A stretch of 64,000 nucleotides of DNA, from IMG/VR virus record IMGVR_UViG_3300027747_002221, positions 1 through 64,000 of that record; one strand, written 5' to 3'. This document shows, in pieces, positions 1,176-35,426 of this stretch. Both the position numbers and the translations under genes were made by a program. Position 1 is the first letter of the stretch; each line of letters opens with the position of its first letter. Under the pieces are notes generated by a model. It saw only the letters and a list, made by a program, of their open reading frames with translations. It made no database searches and had not been told where the DNA came from.

Positions 1176-1899
1176 AGGGTTCTCCTTTATAAACTTTTAT
1201 ATATTTATTATAGATTTCTTCAGCAATAAATTGTTGTCCAATCCCATTAGGATGATTATCTTTTTCTGATAATACAAATTTAGAATATTTGGATGAAAAA
1301 GTATATCCTCCAAGTTTTTTATCGGATGGCCAACCAATAATATTATTCATATTATCTATTTTATTGAAATATTTTGAGTTTAATAGTTGAGCAAAAAACT
1401 TAGTTTGATCTATATCTGTTCTAAAAATATTAACTAATGGAAAATGTATTATTGGAATTTGTTTCATCTGACAGAAATCATCAAGATAACAAATTAATCT
1501 AAGTGTTTGTTCTATACACTCCATATGCAATTCTTTTTTATCTATATGTTCCTTTAATTTTTTGGAAAAAGAATTCAATTCCTCTAAAAAATTCGGATCA
1601 TGATCTTCACAGTAAATGTTATTAATGTCATACTGGTCATACAATGATGTTTTTAATCCGTACGTCCATCCAACAACCACTAAATCTATTTTTTCAGGAT
1701 TTTCCAATATATTGGACATTAATTTGTCATACAAATAGATATTAGATGCACCTGTCTTTGAAATATTTTTAACAGGTAAATTTAATTTTTCGGATATTAA
1801 ATCTGGCCATTTTTTAAAATTAAAATCCACATCTAAATCATCATGGGGTTGCCATTTACCATCTGAATAACTAGTACCAGCAGTTAGAATATATTTCAT
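1150..1899 (-). CDS. SGNH/GDSL-like hydrolase or acyltransferase
   Basis: N-terminal AGTSYS, GASN block, C-terminal DNHPN (DxH) motif. Confidence 0.55.
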   Translation of the reverse strand: MKYILTAGTSYSDGKWQPHDDLDVDFNFKKWPDLISEKLNLPVKNISKTGASNIYLYDKLMSNILENPEKIDLVVVGWTYGLKTSLYDQYDINNIYCEDHDPNFLEELNSFSKKLKEHIDKKELHMECIEQTLRLICYLDDFCQMKQIPIIHFPLVNIFRTDIDQTKFFAQLLNSKYFNKIDNMNNIIGWPSDKKLGGYTFSSKYSKFVLSEKDNHPNGIGQQFIAEEIYNKYIKVYKGEPCDKNDIPC

Positions 1900-5958: not shown

Positions 5959-6458
5959 AATATATTAAAATCAAAAGATGCCACTCGGCGTTGTATACTA
6001 GATGGTGTTGCTTTATGCCAGAACTTTTTACCGTTATTTACTAGGAATAAATCTCCAGCAATTGGCTGAAAAGATTCTTCGCAATCCCCATATTTAAATT
6101 GGACTGCTCCGCCAGTTTCTAAATAAGTATTATCAAAATAATATAGAAAAAATAAATCGTACCCCTCAAACATATCAGTATGCCAACCTTGATTATCCTT
6201 ATCTACACCGTCCCACACGATAAATTTATTATATCTCGAATTATGCCAATTAGCATCTATATATTTTTCTTTTAAGTAATATGCAAATGTGTTTAATCTA
6301 TTAGTTAATTCCAAAGGAATATCTTTGATACCATTATCTCTAGATCTTTCTTCCACATTCAATAATTTAAAATCATTAATTTTTATTAATGATAGCGCAT
6401 CGGGTTCCAAAAATTTAAAAAATCCCTTTTCTTCTATATCTTTTACTATACTAGACAT
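5955..6458 (-). CDS. 2OG-Fe(II) oxygenase
   Basis: WDGVD...WHTD...GGAVQF...FWHKA...RRVASFDF. Confidence 0.72.
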   Translation of the reverse strand: MSSIVKDIEEKGFFKFLEPDALSLIKINDFKLLNVEERSRDNGIKDIPLELTNRLNTFAYYLKEKYIDANWHNSRYNKFIVWDGVDKDNQGWHTDMFEGYDLFFLYYFDNTYLETGGAVQFKYGDCEESFQPIAGDLFLVNNGKKFWHKATPSSIQRRVASFDFNIL

Positions 6459-8125
6459 GATGCCATTACCTCACTTTTAATAATCTCCAAATTATTTATT
6501 AATAATTCTTCAATAGTTTGTATTCTAAATTTGCCTAGTAACATTCTTATTGATCTAGGTTTAGAATTTTGGTCAAAAATATCATCAATTTCTTCTTGTA
6601 TAGGAATAAAATCATCTAGTTGCTTTATTATATTAAAACTAAGTTTGGCAAAATCTCCGGGTGTTATATATGTTTCAAATAAATGATAGCAATTTTTTAT
6701 TAAAAAATTACCTGCATTATTCATAAACCACATCTCTTTTATATCATCTTCAGTAAAAGAATAACAAGATTTTATCGTTTCAAAATAATTTACTTTATTT
6801 TTATACAATGTATTCCAACTATCAGACCCAGCTTCGTCTACTATATCGGAATAAACTTTTACAGTTTTAATGTTATACTTTTCTTTATAAACTTTATCGT
6901 TTAATCTAGAATCCGGAAGAAACATATAGTCATGTCTATAACTTCCCCATGCCTTAAAATTCCATATTATTTCCATTTCGTCGTAAAAATCTTGTATTGT
7001 TGAGCCTGGCATGCCCAATATTAATTCTAATGCAGGAACAGGAAAATTAAATTCTTCGCATCTATTTTTAATATGTTCACTTAATTTAATTTTATCTTTA
7101 AAAGAAAGATCAATCCTTTCTGCAACTTTCATTGCCTCATCTGATATACTTTGTATTGAAACTGTAGGCACTATAGAATTTCTAATTAGATCATTCCATT
7201 TATCATCTTTTTGGTTTTTTATTCTAATATCCGATCCAACTATATTAAACCAAGAATCAATTAATTTTTTTCTTCTATTTAAATCTTTGGATTTAACAGT
7301 CGAAATATCAGTCAGACTAAATTTATTATTCCATGCAAATTCAAATATTTCTAAATCTCTTTCTTCAAAAGCACCAAAATTTGCATCAGTTAAATATGCT
7401 CCAGTATACCCACATTTGATCATAGCTAAAATATCTCGTTTAACTATATCCAATGGCTTTTTGTAAATTTTTGTTCCTATTCCTCCACCCCATTCGCAGA
7501 ATACACATTTATAGGGACACCCCCGTGTTGTTTCCAAAACAATAAAAGGTTCCATTTGTTTTGTATAAGCATAATTTAAAATTTCAGTTAAATACTTTTC
7601 ATGTTCTTCATATACTGAATAGTTAATATCGAGTAAATATGTTTTATTTTTTTCAGATTGCAATTCCCACGATACATCTTTTTTATTAGGTTTGCCATTT
7701 GAGGTAAACCAGGAATCAATTAAATCTTCTACGAATACTTCTCCAGGTTTAGTGGGTTGGCATATAAAATCATAATCAATCCTTGATTCTAAAAATTTAT
7801 TGTCATTGGTACCAATATGCGGGCCACCTAATACTGTAATTTTATTTGAATTTTTATTTTTAATTGTTTTTGCTATATTATCTAATATATCGTAATTCCA
7901 GACATATGAAGAAAATAAAATTATATCTGCTGTTTGTATTTCTTCAATTACCTCATCTATAGTCTGATACATATCCCATTTATAAGGAGCTGGCAACCAT
8001 TCTACATTTTTAGAATATTTACCGTAACGTGTATAGTGACTTTGACATAGTAAATATGTCAAATTATTTACTAAAGACCAGTCAGCGTGAGGGGGATTAA
8101 TGAATGCTATTTTTAATTTCAACAT
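6446..8125 (-). CDS. Cobalamin-binding (B12-dependent) radical SAM protein
   Basis: N-terminal Rossmann-like FSSYVWN...VLGGPHI; ETTRGCPYKCVFC; LTDANFG. Likely start MLKLKIAFINPP at 8125 (ORF track extends to 8161). Confidence 0.82.
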   Translation of the reverse strand: MLKLKIAFINPPHADWSLVNNLTYLLCQSHYTRYGKYSKNVEWLPAPYKWDMYQTIDEVIEEIQTADIILFSSYVWNYDILDNIAKTIKNKNSNKITVLGGPHIGTNDNKFLESRIDYDFICQPTKPGEVFVEDLIDSWFTSNGKPNKKDVSWELQSEKNKTYLLDINYSVYEEHEKYLTEILNYAYTKQMEPFIVLETTRGCPYKCVFCEWGGGIGTKIYKKPLDIVKRDILAMIKCGYTGAYLTDANFGAFEERDLEIFEFAWNNKFSLTDISTVKSKDLNRRKKLIDSWFNIVGSDIRIKNQKDDKWNDLIRNSIVPTVSIQSISDEAMKVAERIDLSFKDKIKLSEHIKNRCEEFNFPVPALELILGMPGSTIQDFYDEMEIIWNFKAWGSYRHDYMFLPDSRLNDKVYKEKYNIKTVKVYSDIVDEAGSDSWNTLYKNKVNYFETIKSCYSFTEDDIKEMWFMNNAGNFLIKNCYHLFETYITPGDFAKLSFNIIKQLDDFIPIQEEIDDIFDQNSKPRSIRMLLGKFRIQTIEELLINNLEIIKSEVMASCLV

Positions 8126-9116
8126 ACTTAAAAGTCTCTTTAAAGACGCACTCACCCACATCTCTTACAATTTTTTTATAGTCATTTTTTATAAAACAAG
8201 TAAAAGGGCATTTTTTAAAATATTCACATTCGAAACAATTGTATTGATCAAAGAATTTTTGTATTATGATGGTAGAACCTAAATTTTTAGTGCTACTATC
8301 TCTTAATAAAACAGATCCTGAGCATCCGGCAGGATTAGTACCATCATACATAACTGTATAACTATTGCCTCTTGTACAGGACATTCTATTTTCTCTAGAA
8401 TTTTCTGTAAAATATGATATATTCAAACATAAAGGGTAATTATCAACCAAGTGTTTATAAAATTTTAATAGGTCTGATTCTTTTGGCATTAAGGTTTCAG
8501 AAATACTTATTGATGGTAGAAAAGAATCCCAATCGCATCTGAAATTATTATACAAATAATCAAAATATGAATCGCCCTTTATAACAGCTTCAATATTTTG
8601 TTTTGTCATTACCAAGGATATCATTTCAATTTTATCTTTAAAAATTTCTATATTATTTTTAAAGATATCAAACTGAGTATTAGTAAATCTACCATGGGGA
8701 TCGTATGATACTGATATTTTTAAATTATTTTTTTCAAGGAAATCTGAAACTTTTTTAGTTTCAAAAAAAACTAAATTTGTAACAAAATTAAAAACTAGTG
8801 TTTTTTCGGTATCCACCTTACTTTTTATTTTATCTATGAATCTTTGATATATACTTAAAAATTCTTCTTGAATCCAAATATCTTGAAATATTTCTCCACC
8901 CATTATATGTAATTTAAAATATGTAGATCTTTTATTATTATTGATCCATTCTACGATTCCTGGGACTTTGGAAAGTATTTCTTTTTCAGATGCACCTTGT
9001 GTATTGGTATGATCTTGAGGACAAAATACACACTTAAGATTGCAATGATCAAAAAGACAAATAACTAATTCTGCATAATCTATAATTTTTTTATCAATTA
9101 ATTCATAGGGTATCAT
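8097..9116 (-). CDS. Radical SAM protein with Cys-rich (SPASM-like) C-terminus
   Basis: CNLKCVFC, MGGE; C-terminal CTRG...GCSG...CFECEYFKKCPFTC...C. Confidence 0.82.
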   Translation of the reverse strand: MIPYELIDKKIIDYAELVICLFDHCNLKCVFCPQDHTNTQGASEKEILSKVPGIVEWINNNKRSTYFKLHIMGGEIFQDIWIQEEFLSIYQRFIDKIKSKVDTEKTLVFNFVTNLVFFETKKVSDFLEKNNLKISVSYDPHGRFTNTQFDIFKNNIEIFKDKIEMISLVMTKQNIEAVIKGDSYFDYLYNNFRCDWDSFLPSISISETLMPKESDLLKFYKHLVDNYPLCLNISYFTENSRENRMSCTRGNSYTVMYDGTNPAGCSGSVLLRDSSTKNLGSTIIIQKFFDQYNCFECEYFKKCPFTCFIKNDYKKIVRDVGECVFKETFKYVEIKNSIH

Positions 9117-13177: not shown

Positions 13178-14848
13178 TTACATTAAGGCAATTTCAATTA
13201 TGCCTTCCTCATGTGTAGTTTTATCTTCCAATGCAATAAACCTAATCGGCAAATTATTAATATCTGTTCTTACCGCAATGCCGGGATTTGTAGATACGGT
13301 TAATAAATCGCCCTTACTACAAGTTCCGATTATTCTAATTGGAACGCGTCCTTTAAGTGCAACTGCTTGAGAATTTTCTAATTCCGAATTCATTAAGTAT
13401 GCAGGTTTATCAGAAATAACACCTATTATTCTATTGGGATAATGCATAGTTGCAATAGTTACTTCTTTTTCTCCACCTATCATAACTATGGTACCAACCG
13501 GATATTCTATATCGGTTAAATATTTTTCTGCCAAGTCAGCATAGTTTGCAGAAGTTGCTGTTCCTGAGAAGGTTGTGGCATATAAAGTATTAATTGCAGG
13601 ATTAAAGTAAAAATTTCCAAATCCGCTCACGCATGGAGTTTGTACACCAAATCCAGAAACAAAAACGGGATAGAAGTTTTGGTTGGCGCCAAGGCCAGTT
13701 ACAGAAATTGTGGTGCTAGATATCGATAATCCTGTTGCGCCAATCGGACCTGTTGCGCCAGTTAATCCCGTTGCGCCAGGTAGGCCCGGTGAACCAATTG
13801 ATCCTGTTGCGCCTGTTGAGCCTTTAGGACCCGTCGCTCCTGGGATAATGCTGGTTGCGCCAGTTGCGCCAATTCCTGTAGCACCTGTTGCGCCAATCGG
13901 ACCTGTTGCGCCAGTTAATCCCGTTGCGCCAGGTAGGCCAGTTGCACCCGTTGCACCCAATCCTGTTGCGCCCGTTGCACCCAATCCTGTTGCGCCTGTT
14001 GAGCCGTTCGCGCCGGTTGCACCGGTTGAACCTGTTGAGCCTTTCGCGCCGGTTGCCCCGGTGAATCCTGTAGCGCCAATCGGACCTGTTGCTCCTGTTC
14101 CGGTTGCGCCCGATGCACCCACTCCTGTTGCGCCAGTTAGACCCGTTGCGCCGGTTAAACCCGTTGCACCAGTTGGTCCTGTGCTCCCTGTTGAGCCAGT
14201 TGATCCCGTTGGTCCGGTTGTGCCGGTCGCACCCACAATGGCATTTCCCTGAGCACCAGTTGCACCCACGGGCCCTGTTGCGCCGGTTGGTCCTATAGAT
14301 CCTGTAGCACCGCGAAGACCTGTTGCGCCAGTGGGGCCTGTAACAATTACATTAGAACCCATAGGCCCAACTGGCCCAGTAGCACCAATAGGACCAGCTG
14401 GACCTTGCCCACCACCTAAAACGGGTAATATTGAAACAATATCGCCGGCTACTGTTGCAGTTGAAAGTATAACAGAATTAGATGTTACCGTATAGTCCGC
14501 TGCTTCTAAAGGACCACCTGGCGAAATTAAAACACCATTGACCCAGACTAAAACAGGATCAGTATTTGAATTAAATGTTAAATAAGTGCCCGCTAAACTA
14601 TTTGTTGTGTTATCAAATGTTGTTGTTGCATTTGCTGTTACATAATCATATCTAACTAAGGTTGAAGTATTTGCATCCAGCGGTGACCAATATCTTGTAC
14701 CATTTGGATCGCCCCGTAAATAATATCCAAGCGCACCCGGTAAACCTAAATTTGGTTCTGCCTGAGATAGCTGTAAGAAATTATATCTATCTAAAGATAT
14801 ATTGCCAGTTGCTGTGCGTACTTTGCCGCTTAAATTTTGTAGTGCCAT
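13178..14848 (-). CDS. Collagen-like tail fibre protein with C-terminal chaperone-like domain
   Basis: Long G-X-Y run ([10 protein letters not shown]); C-terminal [10 protein letters not shown]...GVIS..PAYLMN...ALKGRVP domain typical of large-phage fibres. Confidence 0.75.
13725..14410 (-). repeat. Collagen-like Gly-X-Y coding repeat (GATG[P/L/A/S]T)
   Basis: Degenerate 9/18-nt repeats (cctgttgcgcc, ccagttgcacc); locally GC-rich. Confidence 0.9.
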
Positions 14849-27724: not shown

Positions 27725-27753
27725 ATTATAATATAAAATTACAATCTTGTCAA
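27725..27753 (-). promoter_or_regulatory. Sigma70 early promoter
   Basis: TTGACA-17-TATAAT. Confidence 0.75.
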
Positions 27754-27761
27754 GGACTTAG

Positions 27762-28004
27762 TTATCCATTTCTATGATGTCTGCTCTGGCGGTTGCCTTT
27801 TGCATAGGTCTTCAAATACTCAATACCTACTGTACCGTCTTCAATTTCTTCCAACGCTCGCAGAATATTGCTTCTTGCATCACTATGCTTTTCCTTTTTT
27901 AGTTCTCGTGCTCTTGCAGTAGCAACCAAAACCATATCATACCGATTGCCTATTTTACGTACGGCATCTTCTGATGTATACCTACCCCGATCTAGATCTT
28001 TCAT
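27762..28004 (-). CDS. rpoZ: RNA polymerase omega subunit homolog
   Basis: TSEDAVRKIGNRYDMVLVATARAREL...ALEEIEDG vs E. coli [26 protein letters not shown]...ALREIEEG. Confidence 0.85.
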   Translation of the reverse strand: MKDLDRGRYTSEDAVRKIGNRYDMVLVATARARELKKEKHSDARSNILRALEEIEDGTVGIEYLKTYAKGNRQSRHHRNG

Positions 28005-28017
28005 AACTACCTTTATA

Positions 28018-28094
<77 letters not shown>

Positions 28095-28265
28095 AATTTA
28101 TTTAATTGTTTTCGTTACTATTAGTTTGTTGTTCGTTATATTGTTGAAGACGCATTTCAAATTGTTCTTCAGTCAAATTATGCCAACCTATACAAACTCC
28201 TGTTGGGCTACGACCACACCCGCATTGGGTATTTACTTCTGTCAAAGTATCTCTTGGATTAACTA

Positions 28266-28511
28266 TCATTCCATCTCCTTCTTTTTAATTTTCATTCCAA
28301 CAAATGTTCCAAAAAATGCACCTAGAATAGCAGGAATCATTAACCAATGATTCGTTGTATAATTTATAATAGCTATACTACCTAGCACATAGCAAGCCAC
28401 TGCCCATATACTAGCTTTTAATACTTGATTATGCTGTACATATCTTAAGTAATATGTATAAACTATATCGAGTAAAAAAATAGCTATAAATGTTGTTACA
28501 TAATCTATCAT
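28266..28511 (-). CDS. Small membrane protein
   Basis: Real start MIDYVTT at 28511 (the longer ORF overlaps tRNA-Leu); three hydrophobic segments. Confidence 0.6.
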   Translation of the reverse strand: MIDYVTTFIAIFLLDIVYTYYLRYVQHNQVLKASIWAVACYVLGSIAIINYTTNHWLMIPAILGAFFGTFVGMKIKKKEME

Positions 28512-28516
28512 ATTTT

Positions 28517-28602
28517 TGGTACCAGAGACGGGACTCGAACCCGTATGCCCTTGCGAGCGGCAGATTTTAAGTCTGCTGTGTATACCATTCCACCACTCTG
28601 GC
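28517..28602 (-). tRNA. tRNA-Leu(TAA)
   Basis: GCAGA-CTTAAAA-TCTGC, long variable arm, CCA. Confidence 0.92.
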
Positions 28603-28642
28603 ATTTGCTTATTATAAACTCTTTAGCTAAAAAGAACAATCT

Positions 28643-28933
28643 TTAGTCATCCAAAACATGATCCGCAACAGGCGAAACCTTATCCAAATAATTCTCTTTA
28701 TATCTTTTCTTTGATTCTTCCATATCAATGGAAATGCCAACTGAATCTTTTACTACAGTATAAACGGAATGCATAATCTTTTGTACCATTCTTTTTGCCA
28801 TGTCATCTATTACTTTATACGGATCGTCACCTGTTGCAATTCTTTGGAGAGCAAATCCATATTCATATTTACGAACTCGATCTACCCATTCTTCGAAAGT
28901 TTCATCTGGTTTTATTCTGATTACGTTGGACAT
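28643..28933 (-). CDS. Stand-alone glutamyl-tRNA reductase (HemA) dimerization-domain-like protein
   Basis: RVRKYEYGFALQRIATGDDPYKVIDDMAKRMVQKIMH fits the HemA C-terminal pattern RxxExxxAxxxLAxGxDPxxVLxxLxxxLxxKLxH. Confidence 0.6.
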   Translation of the reverse strand: MSNVIRIKPDETFEEWVDRVRKYEYGFALQRIATGDDPYKVIDDMAKRMVQKIMHSVYTVVKDSVGISIDMEESKKRYKENYLDKVSPVADHVLDD

Positions 28934-28939
28934 TCATTT

Positions 28940-29302
28940 TTAATCTTTAATTTGGCTATCGCCTGGCATTACTCTATAGTTATCTTCCACAGAATCTGGC
29001 GTGGAGACTTCTATAACTGTACCTGCTTCAATACACTCTAATTGGTGTGGCATACAAGGAACATTGTGCCATACCGCACCTTCATGCAATTCTTTTTCGA
29101 GAACTTCTGCTGTCATAGTATCAATCCAACGAACAATAAACTTGCCACTTTGTATGTACCAGGTTTCTTCTTTGTCTTTATGGAAGTGCATACTAAACTT
29201 AGCGCCCGCGTTGAAGTTCATAAACTTTCCGCAATATTTGTCATTGGTAGCCCAGATTAATTCTGAACCCCAACCTTTTGTAACCAAACCTGTTAATCTC
29301 AT
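28940..29302 (-). CDS. Cupin domain protein
   Basis: KGWGSELIW...FSMHFHKDKEETW...PHQL...EVST. Confidence 0.75.
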   Translation of the reverse strand: MRLTGLVTKGWGSELIWATNDKYCGKFMNFNAGAKFSMHFHKDKEETWYIQSGKFIVRWIDTMTAEVLEKELHEGAVWHNVPCMPHQLECIEAGTVIEVSTPDSVEDNYRVMPGDSQIKD

Positions 29303-29317
29303 TAAACTTCCTAACTA

Positions 29318-29391
29318 TGGAGCGGGATAGGAGAATCGAACTCCTGACTTGAACTTGGAAGGATCTCGTTTTACCACTAAACTAACCCCGC
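29318..29391 (-). tRNA. tRNA-Gly(TCC)
   Basis: Cloverleaf, CTTCCAA loop, CCA. Confidence 0.9.
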
Positions 29392-29883
29392 TTATGCTGC
29401 TAGCGCCGCCATAGCCATGACCTCTTTTAATCGGTCCGCGGCATAACTTGCGGCAAACGCATTTGGTTTAACCATAGGTACTACGTTACACATACCTTTG
29501 ATATAACCAACTGCTTGTTGAATAACTATAGAACTATTATAACATTCTTTAGGATTAATGTCAAGATGAATTTGAACTTCCTTGTCACCTATAACATCTG
29601 CTTCTAAAAGTTTGTGATATAATTCTGCAACTTTGTAAACTTCTGTCATTAGACGCATAGATGGTTTCCCCGCTTTTGCATCAAAGTCTATTTCAGTTTG
29701 TATTTCTCCAAAAATCTTACAACCATGGCATCCATCGATATGGACTACAATCGCAAGGGTATAATCTGCATACCATTTTCCATTGCGTCTATAGCGTTCG
29801 GAGTCTGCTCCTAAATATATTTTAGTTTCAGGACTTTGTTCTGCAATAAATCTTGTTACTTCAGCTATATCAATTTTTTTCAT
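29392..29883 (-). CDS. RNase H-like YkuK/DUF458 family protein
   Basis: IYLGADS...E..K...IHLDIN...KPNAFAASYAAD. Confidence 0.7.
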   Translation of the reverse strand: MKKIDIAEVTRFIAEQSPETKIYLGADSERYRRNGKWYADYTLAIVVHIDGCHGCKIFGEIQTEIDFDAKAGKPSMRLMTEVYKVAELYHKLLEADVIGDKEVQIHLDINPKECYNSSIVIQQAVGYIKGMCNVVPMVKPNAFAASYAADRLKEVMAMAALAA

Positions 29884-29897
29884 AGTAGCACCTTTTG

Positions 29898-29971
29898 TGG
29901 AGCGGGTAGCGAGAATCGAACTCGCGAATAAACCTTGGCAAGGTTTCAGGTTACCATTACATCATACCCGC
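29898..29971 (-). tRNA. tRNA-Gly(GCC)
   Basis: AAACC-TTGCCAA-GGTTT, CCA. Confidence 0.92.
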
Positions 29972-29979
29972 ATATTTAA

Positions 29980-30008
29980 ATTATAACACCAAACAAACAT
30001 TTTGTCAA
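29980..30008 (-). promoter_or_regulatory. Sigma70 early promoter
   Basis: TTGACA-17-TATAAT. Confidence 0.75.
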
Positions 30009-30016
30009 GCATTATT

Positions 30017-30090
30017 TGGTACCCCGTCACGGAGTCGAACCGCGGCCCTCAGTTTTGGAGACTGATGTGCTACCGTAACACTTACGAGAT
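30017..30090 (-). tRNA. tRNA-Trp(CCA)
   Basis: TCAGT-CTCCAAA-ACTGA, CCA. Confidence 0.88.
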
Positions 30091-30327
30091 ATTATTTTTA
30101 TACATAGCCATTAAGGCATCTTCTGTGGTCAAAATATCGTAGAACTCATCTTTGTCAGTTCCCGTATTATCAATTACGGATTTTTTTGATATGGATTTAA
30201 ACGCTTCATCTTCATTCTGTTGATCTTCAATTTCTCTTAGATCTCTGCCAAAAATAGCGTCCCATCTATTTTTGTATTCCTCATTGGTAACACTAAATGG
30301 TCTTGGGATAGAACCTTTTCCTGTCAT
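30082..30327 (-). CDS. Small hypothetical phage protein
   Basis: MTGKGSIPRPFSV...WDAIFG; TATAAATA at 30360-30367 upstream. Confidence 0.55.
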   Translation of the reverse strand: MTGKGSIPRPFSVTNEEYKNRWDAIFGRDLREIEDQQNEDEAFKSISKKSVIDNTGTDKDEFYDILTTEDALMAMYKNNIS

Positions 30328-30373
30328 TGCAATCTCCTAATAAATAAATGATAATAACATATTTATATCTACC

Positions 30374-30949
30374 ATGGATCCATACCTCGAGTTAGAAGTT
30401 TCTATCGACGCAACCGACGAAGAAATAAAAATACAATATAGAGCTATGGCTATGATTCATCATCCCGACAAAGGTGGAGATGAAGAAAAATTTAAACGTA
30501 TAAAAGAAGCGTATGAGATTTTATCTGATCCTATACGTCGTAAGGCATATGAAATATCTGGCGATGCAGAAACTAATTTACAAATTAGGAATGCTGCACT
30601 TGATCATATTGCTCAAATGATGGGACAAATTGTTCCCCAATTTAATTCTGAAGCTGATGATTTGTTTGCTATAATGAGACACGAAGTAAATAATATACGC
30701 CAGGGTATGATTGAAAATACAAACGTATGTGTTGGATATATGGCAAATCTACAAAAGGTTATGGTCAGAGTAAATGCCAAACATGATAAACATAATATCA
30801 TAATGGATATACTGCAAAAACAAATAGATTTTAGAAATCGAGAACACGCGGAATTTGCGCAACGTATTAAGGTTTGTGATCTTGAAATTGAAATTCTCAA
30901 AGACTACGAATATGGTTTAATAGAACGTATTCAATTGCCTGAGAATTAA
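30374..30949 (+). CDS. J-domain (DnaJ-like) protein
   Basis: MDPYLELEV...HHPDKGGDEEKFKRIKEAYEILSD (HPD motif), then helical C-terminus. Confidence 0.85.
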   Translation: MDPYLELEVSIDATDEEIKIQYRAMAMIHHPDKGGDEEKFKRIKEAYEILSDPIRRKAYEISGDAETNLQIRNAALDHIAQMMGQIVPQFNSEADDLFAIMRHEVNNIRQGMIENTNVCVGYMANLQKVMVRVNAKHDKHNIIMDILQKQIDFRNREHAEFAQRIKVCDLEIEILKDYEYGLIERIQLPEN

Positions 30950-30950
30950 A

Positions 30951-31024
30951 TGGATGCGGGAGATGGATTCGCACCACCCTCGAGAGAGCTTATGAGACTC
31001 TTCGGGTCACTAGACCTTCCCGCG
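30951..31024 (-). tRNA. Atypical tRNA-Met(CAT), initiator-like (C1:A72)
   Basis: CGCGGGA/TCCCGCA acceptor, 4-bp D-stem with 4-nt loop, CTCATAA loop, T-loop TGCGAAT, CCA. Confidence 0.7.
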
Positions 31025-31029
31025 CAATC

Positions 31030-31105
31030 TGGTGGTAATGAGTGGACTCGAACCACTAACACTCTGCTTATGAAGCAGGAAGACTAACCATTGTCCTACA
31101 TTACC
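31030..31105 (-). tRNA. tRNA-Met(CAT), elongator
   Basis: Cloverleaf, CTGC-TTCATAA-GCAG, CCA. Confidence 0.85.
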
Positions 31106-31124
31106 TATTACATAAAAATATAAA

Positions 31125-31214
31125 TGGCGGAGCGTCAGGGAGTCGAACCCTGTGAACCATTTTACCTGTTCTACGGTTTAGCAAACCGCTGCCTTACCAC
31201 CCGGCCCACGCTCC
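31125..31214 (-). tRNA. tRNA-Ser(GCT)
   Basis: GCGGT-TTGCTAA-ACCGT, long variable arm, GCCA. Confidence 0.92.
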
Positions 31215-31218
31215 ATTT

Positions 31219-31310
31219 TGGCGGAAGACGGAGGAGTCGAACCCCATCCCTGTTAAGAGAACCTGGTTTTCAAGGCCAGTCGCAGGACCAACCCCGCTGC
31301 ATCATCTTCC
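31219..31310 (-). tRNA. tRNA-Ser(TGA)
   Basis: CTGGC-CTTGAAA-ACCAG, long variable arm, GCCA. Confidence 0.88.
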
Positions 31311-31424
31311 AAATTTGTGTTAGGTATTTTTGTGTCAGGAACCTAACAAACCCCGTGAGCACAGCCCATCCTGTTTTCGTGTCAGCGGAGGCGGAATATG
31401 GTTACAGGTCCGCCCTGTTATTTA
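31311..31424 (-). ncRNA. Candidate structured ncRNA between tRNA-Phe and tRNA-Ser
   Basis: GC-rich non-coding spacer with several helices (see findings). Confidence 0.4.
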
Positions 31425-31500
31425 TGGTACCAAGAGACGGGATCGAACCGCCCACACCCGGATTTTCAATCCGGTGCTCTACCAACTGAGCTATCTTGGC
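31425..31500 (-). tRNA. tRNA-Phe(GAA)
   Basis: CCGGA-TTGAAAA-TCCGG, CCA. Confidence 0.93.
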
Positions 31501-31502
31501 AT

Positions 31503-31577
31503 TGGGTCGAGGTACGAGGATCGAACTCGTGATAGCGGAATCACAACCCGCGGTTTTACCACTAAACTAACCTCAAC
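31503..31577 (-). tRNA. tRNA-His(GTG)
   Basis: Encoded G-1:C73, GCGGG-TTGTGAT-TCCGC. Confidence 0.92.
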
Positions 31578-31583
31578 ATAGAT

Positions 31584-31660
31584 TGGCCGGCCCTGAGAGA
31601 CTCGAACTCCCAACCTCTAGTTTCGAAGACTAGCACTCTAATCCATTGAGTTAAGGGCCG
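31584..31660 (-). tRNA. tRNA-Arg(TCG)
   Basis: CTAGT-CTTCGAA-ACTAG, GCCA. Confidence 0.92.
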
Positions 31661-31664
31661 TTAT

Positions 31665-31756
31665 TGGTACCAGCGGTGAGACTCGAACTCACTCAAGAAC
31701 GCTAATCTGGCGCTAAAAGGTGTATAAGACCTCTCTGACTACCCAGTCTCGCTGGC
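31665..31756 (-). tRNA. Atypical tRNA with TAT anticodon and long variable arm
   Basis: GCCAGCG/CGCTGGT acceptor, GACT-GGGT-AGTC mini D-arm, GAGGT-CTTATAC-ACCTT, variable hairpin AGCGC/GCGTT, GTGAG-TTCGAGT-CTCAC, ACCA. Confidence 0.75.
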
Positions 31757-31847
31757 AATTAATACTGACTACCATATAGAAACACACTTGATATAGTAGC
31801 ATTTGCTATCACGGATGAACCCGAGTTTAATCAAATATGTTTTTATA
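31757..31847 (-). ncRNA. Candidate three-way-junction ncRNA
   Basis: 13-bp closing stem AAACATATTTGAT/ATCAAGTGTGTTT enclosing two hairpins. Confidence 0.45.
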
Positions 31848-31923
31848 TGGTACGGGCAGAGGGATTCGAACCCACGACCAATAGATTAAAAGTCTACTGC
31901 TCTACCGACTGAGCTATACCCGC
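31848..31923 (-). tRNA. tRNA-Lys(TTT)
   Basis: GTAGA-CTTTTAA-TCTAT, CCA. Confidence 0.93.
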
Positions 31924-32034
31924 GTTTATTGCTCTTCGTAATGCTTTGTTAGGCTTACGATGGCTACCCGCTTTTCTTTTTAAAGCCAAAACAACGAAGG
32001 GGTTACGTTGCCTGACGATTATCTTATGCTTCAT
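31894..32034 (-). CDS. Small very basic ORF (46 aa) running into tRNA-Lys
   Basis: AGGAG RBS; MKHKIIVRQRNPFVVLALKRKAGSHRKPNKALRRAINAGIAQSVEQ; not in ORF track. Confidence 0.55.
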   Translation of the reverse strand: MKHKIIVRQRNPFVVLALKRKAGSHRKPNKALRRAINAGIAQSVEQ

Positions 32035-32053
32035 TTTTATCTCCTAAAACACT

Positions 32054-32082
32054 ATTATAACATCTTTTTTAAAACTTGTCAA
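32054..32082 (-). promoter_or_regulatory. Sigma70 early promoter
   Basis: TTGACA-17-TATAAT. Confidence 0.75.
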
Positions 32083-32085
32083 ATT

Positions 32086-32159
32086 TGGCAGAGGGTACTG
32101 GGATCGAACCAGTGATGACAGAGTCAAAGTCTGTAGTGTTGCCTCTACACTAACCCCCA
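32086..32159 (-). tRNA. tRNA-Gln(TTG)
   Basis: ACAGA-CTTTGAC-TCTGT, GCCA. Confidence 0.9.
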
Positions 32160-32160
32160 A

Positions 32161-32250
32161 CAAAAAAATTATGGCAGGTGAGGTATCCACTACTCAGGGT
32201 CTAGCCCCCTTTCGTTGCCCATTCTCCTTTTACTTTCCTTACCATAAACT
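32161..32250 (-). ncRNA. Candidate structured ncRNA between tRNA-Arg and tRNA-Gln
   Basis: Closing stem TATGGTA/TGCCATA followed by a T-run. Confidence 0.3.
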
Positions 32251-32325
32251 TGGTCCGCCGAAGAGGAATCGAACCTCTATTAATAGCTTAGAAGGCTACT
32301 GTTCTATCCGTTGAACTATCGGCAG
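32251..32325 (-). tRNA. tRNA-Arg(TCT)
   Basis: GTAGC-CTTCTAA-GCTAT, CCA. Confidence 0.92.
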
Positions 32326-32330
32326 GTATT

Positions 32331-32594
32331 TTATTCTGCGACTGCCAATACATTATCCTCAGAAACTACACCGAGATACATATCGCCTTCTTTTACTGTC
32401 TTGATATTTTGCCATTGCAAATATACAATATCTCCAACTTTGACTTCTTCAACATCTGGTCCAATTGCAAGTACAGTTCCTGTCTTTGCTCTAGGATCAG
32501 CTAAAGTCTTGCCTACATAGATACCGCTTTCAGTTTCTTCTTGACGTTCCGTATCTTTAACTAGTATATTGTTTCTAAGTGGTTGATATTTCAT
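32331..32594 (-). CDS. groES: Co-chaperonin GroES (Cpn10)
   Basis: YQPLRNNILVK...TESGIYV...GTVLAIGP...VKVGDIV...EDNVLAV. Confidence 0.88.
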   Translation of the reverse strand: MKYQPLRNNILVKDTERQEETESGIYVGKTLADPRAKTGTVLAIGPDVEEVKVGDIVYLQWQNIKTVKEGDMYLGVVSEDNVLAVAE

Positions 32595-32614
32595 AGTTTT
32601 CTTTCAAGTTAATA

Positions 32615-32688
32615 TGGTGCCCCATGACAGAATCGAACTGCCGTAACCTGATTACAAAACAGGTGTAATACCATTATACTAATAGGGC
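32615..32688 (-). tRNA. tRNA-Thr(TGT)
   Basis: Cloverleaf, TTTGTAA loop, CCA. Confidence 0.9.
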
Positions 32689-32690
32689 AT

Positions 32691-32765
32691 TGGTACCTGG
32701 TGACAGTTTCGAACTGCCGACCCTCTCGGTGTAAACGAGACGCTCTACCACTGAGCTAACCAGGC
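32691..32765 (-). tRNA. tRNA-Val(TAC)
   Basis: TCTCG-TTTACAC-CGAGA, CCA. Confidence 0.93.
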
Positions 32766-32769
32766 AATT

Positions 32770-32854
32770 TGGTGGAGGTAGTTAGATTCGAACCAACTCA
32801 CCCGAAAGAACAGATTTACAGTCTGCCGCGCCTCTCCAACTGCGCCGTACCTCC
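32770..32854 (-). tRNA. tRNA-Tyr(GTA)
   Basis: GCAGA-CTGTAAA-TCTGT, long variable arm, CCA. Confidence 0.93.
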
Positions 32855-32858
32855 AATT

Positions 32859-32933
32859 TGGCTCCCCTGCGTGGGCTCGAACCACGGACCAAATGATTAA
32901 CAGTCATCTACTCTACCACTGAGCTACAAGGGA
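32859..32933 (-). tRNA. tRNA-Asn(GTT)
   Basis: ATGA-CTGTTAA-TCAT, GCCA. Confidence 0.92.
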
Positions 32934-32940
32934 ATATACA

Positions 32941-33017
32941 TGGTCCGTGTGACACGATTCGAACATGCGACCACCTGGTCCCAAACCAGGAGCTCTACCA
33001 GGCTGAGCTACACACGG
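32941..33017 (-). tRNA. tRNA-Pro(TGG)
   Basis: CCTGG-TTTGGGA-CCAGG, CCA. Confidence 0.93.
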
Positions 33018-33024
33018 ATAAATT

Positions 33025-33099
33025 TGGTGGAGGATAGGAGATTCGAACTCCTGACTGAAGCTTGCAAAGCTACTGCGTTCCCAATTACGCCAATCCCCC
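33025..33099 (-). tRNA. tRNA-Ala(TGC)
   Basis: G3:U70 pair, TTTGCAA loop, CCA. Confidence 0.9.
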
Positions 33100-33110
33100 G
33101 AATATTTTTT

Positions 33111-33187
33111 TGGTGCCCCAGGCGAGACTCGAACTCGCAAAATTTGGCTTCTAAGACCAACACGTATACCAATTCCGTCACCGAGGC
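33111..33187 (-). tRNA. tRNA-Leu(TAG) with short variable loop
   Basis: TTGGT-CTTAGAA-GCCAA, 5-nt variable region, ACCA. Confidence 0.85.
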
Positions 33188-33193
33188 AAATAC

Positions 33194-33269
33194 TGGCGGT
33201 CTTAGGGGGTAACGATCCCCACTCTTACGGCGTGACAAGCCGTCGTGCGTCCATGAACACTTTAAGACC
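33194..33269 (-). tRNA. tRNA-Asp(GTC)
   Basis: ACGGC-TTGTCAC-GCCGT, GCCA. Confidence 0.9.
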
Positions 33270-33270
33270 A

Positions 33271-33470
33271 TATTAGGATAAGCTACTGGTTTTCCGGGCC
33301 AGCCCTTAATTGAGCAGTTACTCTGTCCATCCCATTTATTCTGTCGTCTGTGTGCAGTTGGGATTCTGCCTATCAGAGCCTGAGTATTTCTCTCGCTAAC
33401 GGTTTTCTGCCACCGGATCTCTATCGCTAATCAAGCGCTATTTTAACGAAAATAGTAACGGGATCTTTTT
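33271..33470 (-). ncRNA. Candidate ~200-nt multi-hairpin ncRNA
   Basis: No ORF; at least 5 hairpins; directly downstream of a sigma70 promoter. Confidence 0.5.
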
Positions 33471-33480
33471 ACTTGTTTCT

Positions 33481-33508
33481 ATTATAACATCATTACAATA
33501 ATTGTCAA
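33481..33508 (-). promoter_or_regulatory. Sigma70 early promoter
   Basis: TTGACA-16-TATAAT. Confidence 0.7.
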
Positions 33509-33518
33509 GCATTAATTT

Positions 33519-33596
33519 TGGAACCTAGGGTCAGATTTGAACTGACGATTTTACGGATTTGCAATCCGGTGCATTTGACCGCTCTGCCACCTAGGC
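33519..33596 (-). tRNA. tRNA-Cys(GCA)
   Basis: CCGGA-TTGCAAA-TCCGT, TCCA. Confidence 0.9.
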
Positions 33597-33631
33597 ATAA
33601 ACCATTATTTTGTAGCCTGTACACAAAATAA

Positions 33632-33707
33632 TGGCGTCCCGTACCGGATTCGAACCGGTGTGAATAGCGTGAAAGGCTACTATCCTAGGCCTCTAGATGA
33701 ACGGGAC
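33632..33707 (-). tRNA. tRNA-Glu(TTC)
   Basis: GTAGC-CTTTCAC-GCTAT, GCCA. Confidence 0.92.
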
Positions 33708-33710
33708 ATT

Positions 33711-33784
33711 TGGTCCTCTCGGATGGTAACGATCCAACGTCTATCGATTATCAATCGATTGCTCTACCTTTGAGCTACAAGAGG
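33711..33784 (-). tRNA. tRNA-Ile(GAT)
   Basis: ATCGA-TTGATAA-TCGAT, CCA. Confidence 0.9.
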
Positions 33785-33846
33785 AAATGGCATGCAAATT
33801 TTAAATGAACTTTATTTAAATAGCGATCTATTTAAATTATGTGCTA

Positions 33847-33875
33847 ATTATAACACCTTTTAGTAACCTTGTCAA
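33847..33875 (-). promoter_or_regulatory. Sigma70 early promoter heading the tRNA array
   Basis: TTGACA-17-TATAAT. Confidence 0.75.
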
Positions 33876-33899
33876 GCACAGGGTTATTAAAAAATCTAT

Positions 33900-33940
33900 A
33901 AAAAGGAAAACCTCGGACTTTAGGGGTACCGAGGTTTGCT
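33900..33940 (-). terminator. Intrinsic terminator
   Basis: AAACCTCGG...CCGAGGTTT hairpin followed by a T-rich run on the minus strand. Confidence 0.7.
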
Positions 33941-33963
33941 AGATATTTAGTATAAACTATTAA

Positions 33964-34062
33964 CTAACGCGTCTCATATCTCTCCCATGAATTACGTGCA
34001 AAGGCATCTACCGGTTGATAACCGATACTGTGTCTGCATATAATCGTTTTGAGTGTTTGCAC
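33964..34062 (-). CDS. Small ORF (32 aa, GTG start)
   Basis: TATAAATA at 34086-34093, AAAGGA RBS, MQTLKTIICRHSIGYQPVDAFARNSWERYETR, then terminator. Confidence 0.35.
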   Translation of the reverse strand: MQTLKTIICRHSIGYQPVDAFARNSWERYETR

Positions 34063-34112
34063 TTTAGTCCTTTAGTCTATAAAAATATTTATACATCTCG
34101 GTACATCTGTAC

Positions 34113-34334
34113 TCAATTTTTAGAACTTTTTTTATCTAAAAAATCTAGCTTAACCTTAGTAACAACAATCTCATCACGACCAATGGCTTCAAGCCAAGTG
34201 TTTAGTCGATGGATAAGAACATCATCACTCTTAGGATTTTCAAAACTAACAGTACAATCCAAGATTGTATCGCTAGTATTTTGTTCTCTTGAACTGTAAA
34301 TTAGATTAAAGTTCTCATTGATCTTCGCTGTCAT
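34113..34334 (-). CDS. Hypothetical protein
   Basis: Likely start MTAKINENF at 34334. Confidence 0.5.
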   Translation of the reverse strand: MTAKINENFNLIYSSREQNTSDTILDCTVSFENPKSDDVLIHRLNTWLEAIGRDEIVVTKVKLDFLDKKSSKN

Positions 34335-34896
34335 ATGCTTCCTCTTCTTCTGAAATTTTTCGATTTTCTGAAATACAAAACATATCATCTAATTCCGCAG
34401 GAATCTTTTCCAAAATTTCTTCAACAGAATTAGGTATTTGGTATTCCTCTTCTGCACCCTCGGTTTCCCACTTACCGCAGAATCCAACACCTTCTTCGCA
34501 GTAATATGCTTCAACTTTGAAACCAATTAGGTCACTTAGTTTTTCATATGCTGCGATTGGAGGAGACCAGGCAGAGTCAAAATAAACGCATAACGAATTT
34601 TCGGACACTTCGTTGATTCCATGACTGTCACCCACATCCCATTTAGTACCCCATTCAGTAATACAAAAGTCATACCAACTATTATAACCATATTTGTCTA
34701 ATAGTTGCTCGCGTAACTTATCGTACTTTTCACGGTCATCACCACCATGGGTTGTGGTATCAGGATTAGTTAGTTCTTCAGGAACTGGGATAAACTCATT
34801 TAAGAATTTACCCTCAATAAAAGCAGACTCTGCCCTTTTGATAAACTCAGGATTCTCATGTGTAAGAGTCAATACATTATTACACCAATTAGGCAT
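34315..34896 (-). CDS. Conserved phage protein (DUF1281/ferredoxin-like fold family)
   Basis: MPNWCNN...WYDFCITEWGTKWDV...FDSAWSPP...YYCEEG. Confidence 0.6.
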   Translation of the reverse strand: MPNWCNNVLTLTHENPEFIKRAESAFIEGKFLNEFIPVPEELTNPDTTTHGGDDREKYDKLREQLLDKYGYNSWYDFCITEWGTKWDVGDSHGINEVSENSLCVYFDSAWSPPIAAYEKLSDLIGFKVEAYYCEEGVGFCGKWETEGAEEEYQIPNSVEEILEKIPAELDDMFCISENRKISEEEEAYDSEDQ

Positions 34897-34908
34897 GCTG
34901 CTCTCCTA

Positions 34909-35340
34909 TTAAACTAATGCTGGTTCTGCCATTACTTCGGCAAGAGTTTTGATCTCTGTAATCTCAAGATCATCTTCTGCTTTTACGGGCTTAGCAATTT
35001 TTGGTTGCTTTGCTGGAGCTTTTACTGGAGCCTTGGCGGGTGCCTTAGCTGGAGTTTTTGCTGGGGCTTTCTTAGCAGGCTTTGTTGCTGCTACAGTGTT
35101 GCCTTCTTTCTTACCCTGAGTCTCAATAATGAGTTCTGCCCATTGATTAAAAACACCGCCTACATCGAGAAGATGCTGACATGCTTCAGCCTTGGTCATT
35201 AGCTTGGGCAATTCGATAAGCTCAAGTGGGGAATGTCCACCTTTTGCTAAGATTTTAGTACGGGACACGATATCATTCGCGAAACGAACTTTGGTGATAC
35301 CGTGCTGAGTCGACACACCTGCTACTGTAAAATTTGACAT
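34909..35340 (-). CDS. Hypothetical protein with histone-H1-like K/A/P tail
   Basis: KPAKKAPAKTPAKAPAKAPVKAPAK repeat. Confidence 0.6.
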   Translation of the reverse strand: MSNFTVAGVSTQHGITKVRFANDIVSRTKILAKGGHSPLELIELPKLMTKAEACQHLLDVGGVFNQWAELIIETQGKKEGNTVAATKPAKKAPAKTPAKAPAKAPVKAPAKQPKIAKPVKAEDDLEITEIKTLAEVMAEPALV

Positions 35341-35397
35341 ACTTACTCCTTAATAATAAAAAATTAACTTCACCGAAAACTTCTGTTCTCAAACTCT

Positions 35398-35426
35398 ATT
35401 ATAACACCGATTCGATCCGGTGTCAA
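35398..35426 (-). promoter_or_regulatory. Sigma70 early promoter
   Basis: TTGACA-17-TATAAT. Confidence 0.75.

Follow-up and report, generated by a model that had tools for sequence, protein, structure and literature searches.

The tRNA clusters of phages have been known for fifty years to carry extra stable RNAs, the purpose of which is still not understood. In phage T4, the species 1 and species 2 RNAs (encoded by rnaC and rnaD) are small, stable, lie on the same strand as the tRNAs, and still have no known function (PMC9697503), with rnaD (71053-71171) starting just 1 nt after tRNA-Arg (71173-71247). GOLLD and ROOL, which are encoded by phages and prophages often next to tRNA islands, form RNA-only cages and likewise have no known function or protein partner (PMC12286853). 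ROOL, the predicted structure of which contains multiple pseudoknots, is reported to be as abundant as 16S rRNA (PMC12286853). Here, we describe a structured RNA of about 195 nt, occupying the same kind of position in the tRNA arrays of uncultivated freshwater T4-like phages. To our knowledge it is uncatalogued, although it may be among the 8,495 unnamed candidate motifs, some overlapping or next to tRNAs, found in a comparative screen of the same virus collection (PMC10690425), the text of which describes no tRNA-array RNA of this size or fold.

The stretch of DNA that we analyzed, hereafter the window, consists of the first 64 kb of a 222,055-bp IMG/VR virus record (IMGVR_UViG_3300027747_002221). 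The family-B DNA polymerase of this phage is about 49% identical to the gp43 of cyanomyoviruses, so the phage belongs to the T4-like superfamily. It has no psbA. On the minus strand, 28.0-33.8 kb carries 25 tRNA genes and seven perfect TTGACA-N16/17-TATAAT promoters. The RNA lies in a 249-nt gap between tRNA-Cys(GCA) (33519-33596, minus strand), which ends the preceding tRNA transcription unit, and tRNA-Asp(GUC) (33194-33269, minus strand), which has an unusual T-loop (AUCGUUA) and scores only 32.7 bits against the Rfam tRNA model. One of the perfect promoters, TTGACA-16 nt-TATAAT with an extended-10 TG (12 of 12 consensus matches), occupies 33508-33481 on the minus strand, and its -10 hexamer ends about 16 nt before the conserved RNA block. 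No ORF of 30 aa or more lies in the gap on either strand, only chance frames of 24-29 aa. On its own, the fold of this sequence is not beyond chance, with an MFE of -48.4 kcal/mol and a z score of -1.37, since 17 of 200 shuffles fold as well. The evidence that this is more than chance comes from homologues and not from the window alone.

Homologues are numerous. An exact 23-mer from the region (CCGGTGGCAGAAAACCGTTAGCG) occurs in 86 IMG/VR contigs, a second pattern hits at least 120 IMG/VR contigs, and a core pattern hits at least 120 metagenome contigs. In the aligned neighborhoods, conservation jumps from about 20-50% to about 90-100% exactly between window positions 33466 and 33272, which defines a conserved block running from 33466/33464 to 33270 on the minus strand, close to the 33271-33470 proposed in a sequence-only reading of this DNA. 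Among 36 distinct loci sharing a downstream tRNA-Asp, in which the RNA is 191-214 nt long, mean pairwise identity is 81% for the block against 65% for the adjacent tRNA-Asp, and the block is the more conserved of the two in 532 of 630 pairs. The 23-mer used for selection represents only 12% of the length and does not explain this difference. In contrast, the 23-mer has no hit in 185,579 species genomes, while the core pattern has one, a 3-kb tRNA-array contig binned into a cyanobacterial MAG, which is probably a mis-binned phage fragment and only a weak hint as to the host. BLAST searches with type 1 (the form found in the window) and two members of a divergent type 2 described below gave nothing in 50,697 cultured phage records.

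RNAalifold on 65 distinct sequences recovered the hairpins noticed in the sequence-only reading, and a scan of all column pairs for compensatory change added three loop-to-strand pairings. The resulting model consists of seven helices tied together by at least four pseudoknots (PK1 to PK4), and is thus much more knotted than originally seen. On an alignment of homologues (A2), this structure is 96.4% paired, with 20 pairs showing changes on both sides. Its covariation score is 0.208, against at most 0.062 for slid controls, and none of 500 shuffles reaches it. Moreover, G-U pairs such as 195-214 fix the minus strand as the RNA strand. All six helices named in the sequence-only reading exist and are kept in homologues, although one of them, UCCCA/UGGGA (33365-33358 with 33334-33329), which covaries strongly, is a pseudoknot between a hairpin loop and a downstream strand rather than a simple hairpin. 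The motif GAAAACC does occur twice in hairpin loops (33407-33401 and 33294-33288), but only the first copy is conserved, the family consensus for the second loop being UGUGGAAA.

From its 5' end, the RNA starts with a UCC-CG segment (33463-33459), in which UCC (33463-33461) pairs with GGA in the loop of the last hairpin (PK4), and CG (33460-33459) pairs with CG in the loop of the first (PK1; C-G 54, G-C 9, U-G 2). PK4 is 100% paired in type 1, with U-A replacing C-G twice. H1 (CUAUUU/AAAUAG, 33455-33450 with 33443-33438), whose UCGUUA loop provides the PK1 partner, covaries at pairs 13-32 (U-A 57, C-G 6) and 15-30 (C-G 35, U-A 30). H2 (CGCU/AGCG, 33437-33434 with 33428-33425) has a UGAUU loop and is followed by an AUAGAG junction, with the GAU of the loop pairing with AUC at 33418-33416 (PK2) and stacking on H3; pair 41-53 reads U-A 54, A-U 5, and C-G 5. 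H3 (CGGU/ACCG, 33415-33412 with 33403-33400), with its near-invariant loop GGCAGAAA, is invariant in A2, which is partly by construction of the search pattern. H4 (33394-33392 with 33384-33382) is a hairpin of variable length, GAG-AAAUA-CUC here and up to about 40 nt in relatives, in which pair 78-112 reads A-U 39, U-G 18, G-C 6, C-G 1, and U-A 1. H5 consists of UCUG/CAGA (33377-33374 with 33350-33347) plus GCAG/CUGC (33369-33366 with 33357-33354), with the loop AAUCCCAA, and is followed by the junction AGAAUAAA. The H5 loop pairs with UGGGAU at 33334-33329 (PK3), and five of six PK3 pairs show double changes. The universally conserved GGACAG-N-GUAAC-NN-CUCA (33328-33312) includes the short hairpin H6 (GAG/CUC, 33323-33321 with 33314-33312), which also reads GGG/CCC or GGG/CUC. 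Finally, H7 (33308-33299 with 33289-33279), composed of UAAG/CUUA plus GCUGG/CCAGU, corresponds in its upper part (33303-33299 with 33289-33285) to the CUGG/CCAG helix of the sequence-only reading and shows double changes in seven of nine pairs. The RNA ends with a single-stranded A/U-rich tail, UCCUAAUAU (33278-33270).

A divergent paralogue present in the same arrays, which we named type 2, provides independent support for this architecture. A covariance model of the RNA (R1), which scores the block at 227.6 bits and finds one copy in this genome, also finds a second, weak hit of 30-81 bits in many related arrays. Among 100 metagenome loci, there are about 50 of each kind. The type 2 RNAs share only the 5' UUAC-H1 region and the 3' part (AGAAUAAA, GGACAG-N-GUAAC-NN-CUCA, and GGGCU...AGUAGC), yet keep H1, H2, PK2, H3, H5, PK3, H6, H7, and PK4 with different sequences. 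In type 2, PK2 reads CCCUG/CAGGG, UAGCA/UGCUA, UACAG/CUGUA, or UGCUA/UAGCA, H3 reads CGGU/ACCG, CAGU/ACUG, or GGGGU/ACCUC, and PK3 reads AUAAC/GUUAU, UAACA/UGUUA, ACAUU/AAUGU, or ACUUCU/AGAAGU. Across types, PK4 reads UCC/GGA, ACC/GGU, CCUC/GAGG, UCCC/GGGA, ACCA/UGGU, and CCCG/CGGG. A blind covariation scan of the 47-sequence type 2 alignment (A4) ranks PK2 first (pair 46-66, five pair types), ranks PK3 (pair 141-168, six pair types) and H7 highly, and reveals a further pairing between the H3 loop and the strand 5' of H5. This settled one ambiguity, since RNAalifold had paired the 5' UCC with the GGA of GGACAG, which stays invariant when the 5' end changes in type 2, and the H7 loop is the true partner.

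The position of the RNA relative to the tRNAs suggests how it is made. In 45 of 76 loci, the search pattern starts 49-54 nt after the end of a same-strand tRNA, and in 38 of these the conserved AUCC begins 0-2 nt after the encoded CCA, while in the other seven the gap is 4-5 nt. In 21 loci the distance is 102-105 nt, with tRNA-Cys upstream as in the window, and a separate scan found the same consensus promoter at the same distance in 13 of 60 distinct upstream contexts. The description of the RNA as promoter-proximal in the sequence-only reading is thus true for this phage and about a fifth of the distinct contexts, but in most relatives the RNA is internal to the array. Downstream, the next tRNA starts 143-158 nt after the pattern in 61 loci, directly after the A/U-rich tail. 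The downstream neighbors are tRNA-Asp(GUC) in 52 loci, Tyr in 13, Glu in 5, Ala in 3, Cys in 2, and Met in 1, while the upstream neighbors are Tyr in 23, Cys in 21, Glu in 17, and others. Since the tail is also the 5' leader of tRNA-Asp, RNase P cleavage after 33270 would create the 3' end of the RNA, and in most relatives maturation of the 3' end of the previous tRNA would create its 5' end. This is inferred from established tRNA processing, gene geometry, and accumulation, and not from mapped ends.

The RNA is very abundant in lake RNA samples. Parts of the stretch are present in 17 RNA-seq runs, mostly lake and freshwater metatranscriptomes. In four lake metatranscriptomes (X1 to X4) compared with window positions 32600-34000, summed k-mer depth over 33399-33445 in the RNA block is 8,077, 11,658, 1,542, and 1,531, respectively, against 6, 5, 1, and 3 over the promoter bin (33493-33539), 0-13.6 in every bin upstream of the array promoter (33822-34000), and 0-700 in tRNA bins. 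Single-variant contigs reach 297-783x, and contigs identical to the window over 87-89 nt occur in three of the four runs. However, these are assembled contigs, which show neither strand nor ends, and the depth over the block sums many related phage genotypes at 88% identity or more while the flanks are genotype-specific, so that the ratio overstates the enrichment. For the exact window genotype in X1, it is about 50x against 5.5x. In addition, contigs carrying Illumina adapter directly after 33455 (X1 and X3), or after the equivalent base of a variant (X2 and X4), suggest that many cDNAs end 10-13 nt inside the conserved block, which could be an RT stop at the 5' knot or at a modified base, a real cleavage site, or a different 5' end from the one we infer. 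The RNA is among the more abundant non-ribosomal RNAs matching this region in lake metatranscriptomes.

Neither subtype matches any of the 4,227 models in Rfam 15. At gathering score the whole window gives only tRNAs, at E <= 10 a 501-nt segment gives only tRNAs and noise and type 2 relatives only noise, and at E <= 1 four whole loci give nothing relevant. Literature searches for a described tRNA-array RNA of this kind found none. We found no partner protein either. The genome has no Ro60/TROVE (PF05731, absent from the 222-kb genome while controls are positive), RtcB, CCA-adding enzyme, or reverse transcriptase, and the genes inside the array (GroES, a DnaJ-domain protein, an RNase H-like protein of PF04308, a cupin, and an endonuclease) gave no lead.

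Taken together, these findings support the interpretation of the sequence-only reading, a novel phage ncRNA released by tRNA processing, each testable part of which held up. The best-supported account, in which we have reasonable but not full confidence, is that of a stable, non-coding, highly structured RNA transcribed together with the phage tRNAs, here from its own consensus σ70 promoter, and probably excised from the tRNA precursor by tRNA-processing enzymes. One of its pseudoknots pairs the 5' end with the loop of the last hairpin, closing the molecule, and this compactness would let it resist nucleases and accumulate to very high levels. We think that the RNA acts in trans on a conserved partner connected with tRNA or translation, or with phage-host conflict, either as an RNA-only assembly or as the RNA subunit or decoy of a protein. 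While conservation above that of the phage's own tRNAs argues for a conserved partner, trans action is an argument from stability, abundance, and analogy only. More tentatively, this could be a new class of catalytic or self-assembling RNA made by phages, either a ribozyme that helps cut or repair the phage's own tRNA precursors, or a small RNA-only particle, a miniature counterpart of the GOLLD and ROOL cages, that captures a tRNA- or translation-related host factor during infection. On either version, the near-invariant junctions (AUAGA, AGAAUAAA, GGACAG-N-GUAAC) would form the active or binding site.

Two other readings are unlikely but cannot be excluded. The RNA could be a ribozyme, either cleaving itself near its 5' end to release the upstream tRNA with a short trailer or acting on tRNAs. 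Consistent with this, the fold is large and multiply pseudoknotted with many invariant unpaired nucleotides (AUAGA, AGAAUAAA, GGACAG-N-GUAAC, GGGCU, and AGUAGC), the 5' nucleotides are held in two pseudoknots as a cleavage-site strand would be, adapter-junction contigs in four runs place a frequent cDNA end at about 33453-33455, and the RNA sits where a tRNA 3' end must be cut. However, it matches no known ribozyme family, the putative end lies inside H1, which is strongly supported by covariation, so that cleavage there would break the fold, and this end differs by 1-2 nt between variants as an RT stop would. Moreover, ROOL, GOLLD, and OLE are equally ornate, yet are described in a cryo-EM study as homo-oligomeric assemblies of unknown function (PMC12286853). 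Alternatively, and slightly less likely still, the RNA could be a cis-acting part of the tRNA precursor, protecting the 5' end from exonucleases or RNase E, chaperoning or setting the order of processing of the odd downstream tRNA-Asp, or acting as an antitermination element, the stable product being only a by-product. It is always on the tRNA strand and directly abuts tRNAs, it is the first element of the transcript here and in 13 of 60 contexts, its 5' end is buried in pseudoknots, and its frequent neighbor tRNA-Asp has a non-canonical T-loop and scores poorly. In contrast, there is one copy per 25-tRNA array although the array has seven consensus promoters, the neighbors vary, sequence conservation exceeds that of the tRNAs themselves, which is far more than a stabilizer would need, and the RNA accumulates well above the tRNA-array transcripts in the same libraries.

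The remaining readings fare worse. A ligand-binding RNA, either a riboswitch-like sensor or an abundant aptamer sponge for a small molecule such as an immune-signaling nucleotide, is very unlikely. Although the pseudoknotted fold has invariant junction nucleotides typical of aptamers and the RNA is very abundant, it matches no riboswitch family, is larger than most aptamers, and nothing in the data points to a ligand. There is no downstream ORF, expression platform, terminator, or SD-sequestering stem, the next gene being a tRNA in 76 of 86 loci as predicted by ARAGORN, with most of the rest cut off at the contig end, and one locus with no predicted tRNA (L069) carrying a tRNA-like gene visible by eye 4 nt after the element. 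Similarly, two T-box-like ideas do not hold, since the H7 loop, rather than binding the tRNA 3' CCA through its GUGG, pairs with the RNA's own 5' end, and the invariant GAC-A, a would-be Asp specifier, stays invariant whatever tRNA is the neighbor. The RNA has only two GGA motifs, which goes against a CsrA sponge, and UG27-type ncRNA arrays (bioRxiv 10.64898/2026.09.22.753630) have a different context and this genome has no reverse transcriptase. A diverged RNase P RNA, tmRNA, bacterial Y RNA, 6S RNA, or group I intron is very unlikely. The core is built from 5' and 3' parts around a variable middle as in RNase P RNA and tmRNA, and it lies among tRNA genes, but none of the corresponding models gives a hit even at E <= 10 in a 500-nt search, for type 1 or type 2. 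Finally, a conserved DNA site (origin, recombination, or homing site) or a small protein-coding gene, which the very high nucleotide conservation could in principle reflect, as it could recent horizontal spread, is effectively refuted by compensatory changes that preserve RNA pairing, G-U pairs that work only on the minus strand, the absence of a conserved ORF, indels of arbitrary length in H4, and deep coverage in RNA libraries.

How does this RNA compare with the known systems? Like RNase P RNA, tmRNA, and the bacterial Y RNA YrlA, which are structured stable RNAs linked to tRNA biology or resembling tRNA, it has conserved ends around a variable middle. However, ARAGORN finds no tmRNA, the block has no T-arm sequence and no acceptor-like pairing of its ends, it has no tRNA-like module and the genome no Ro60 gene, and the flanking tRNAs are complete, so it is not an intron. 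Like the T4 species 1 and species 2 RNAs, it is a small RNA encoded in the tRNA cluster of a T4-type phage, directly after a tRNA in most relatives, which places it in the same functional category without making it a member. There is no detectable homology, since R1 scores at most 1.2 bits on the T4 region (70.8-71.3 kb) with filters off, and the T4 RNAs are 119 and 139 nt long, with rnaC carrying a tRNA-like T-arm (GGGUUCGAAUCCCGG), while the present RNA has no T-arm and at least four pseudoknots. With two divergent subtypes and hundreds of natural variants, it is a compact example whose fold can be read directly from covariation, and R1 provides a model for annotating a gene that is currently invisible in freshwater phage genomes. 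As for GOLLD and ROOL, the RNA does not match their Rfam models, even locally at E <= 10, but it shares with them a phage origin and a location in or near tRNA islands, with ROOL a multi-pseudoknotted fold, and with GOLLD a conserved part and a variable part, in a molecule several times smaller than GOLLD, members of which often exceed 800 nt, and ROOL, which is also classed as large (PMC12286853).

The tRNA array is punctuated by seven sigma-70 promoters that match the consensus perfectly, at 12 of 12 positions (TTGACA-16/17-TATAAT), six of which also display an extended-10 TG. These promoters lie within 8 kb on the minus strand (window 27725-35426), with their first hexamers starting at 35426, 33875, 33508, 32082, 30008, 29564 and 27753. 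This is far more exact consensus than chance gives and suggests very strong early transcription of the tRNA region. Protein genes are interspersed among the tRNAs (window 28643-32594) and consist of a GroES/Cpn10 homologue (32331-32594, minus strand), a DnaJ-domain protein on the opposite strand (30374-30949, plus strand), an RNase H-like PF04308 protein (29392-29883, minus strand), a cupin or cysteine-dioxygenase-like protein (28940-29302, minus strand), and a small protein resembling the glutamyl-tRNA reductase dimerisation domain (28643-28933, minus strand). Elsewhere in the window, we noted a 556-aa protein with collagen triple-helix repeats (13178-14848, minus strand), which is probably a fibre or tail component, and a 571-aa protein (6446-8161, minus strand) with a sub-threshold match to the B12-binding domain.

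The tRNA-Asp(GUC) that follows the structured RNA (window 33194-33269, minus strand) exhibits a non-canonical T-loop (GGGG-AUCGUUA-CCCC, with A54/U58 instead of U54/A58) and an odd D-arm. It scores only 32.7 bits against the Rfam tRNA model and was missed in the scan at the gathering threshold. Moreover, the CGUUA motif also occurs twice in the non-coding RNA, at its 5' end and in the H1 loop. Further along the array (window 31665-31756, minus strand), ARAGORN calls a 92-nt tRNA-Ile(UAU) with the anticodon at position 31, which the Rfam tRNA model did not report and which may be an intron-containing or otherwise atypical tRNA, or a false call. Conversely, in L069, one of the homologous loci, a tRNA-like gene of roughly 90 nt that ARAGORN did not call lies four nucleotides after the RNA (1176-1265, plus strand), with an acceptor stem TCGCCAT/ATGGCGA, a T-arm GTGGGTTCGAATCCCAC and GCCA at its end.

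As for the 5' portion of the RNA, metatranscriptome contigs from four runs carry Illumina adapter sequence directly after window position 33453-33455, or after its equivalent in a variant. Many cDNA fragments therefore end 10-13 nt inside the conserved block, within the 5' strand of H1, which may reflect a reverse-transcription stop, a modified base or a cleavage site.

In the species-genome collection, the only hit is a 3-kb contig (CAISPN010000008.1; locus L148, 2361-2451, minus strand) binned into an uncultured cyanobacterium MAG. This contig, which is probably a phage fragment and only a weak host hint, carries the 3' half of the RNA, tRNA-Asp, Tyr and Asn, and a tRNA with a CUA anticodon (called tRNA-Pyl, so a possible amber suppressor).

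Finally, although it is absent from the genome of the window, a divergent "type 2" paralogue of the RNA occurs in related phage tRNA arrays, sometimes alongside type 1. It was found in the loci L127 (2152-2359, minus strand), L110 (5785-5996, plus strand), L113 (4258-4467, minus strand), L093 (7653-7857, minus strand), L040 (7417-7630, minus strand) and about 45 more, which together were aligned as A4. When compared to type 1, the type 2 RNA has the same pseudoknot architecture but a different middle domain, with several sub-variants.
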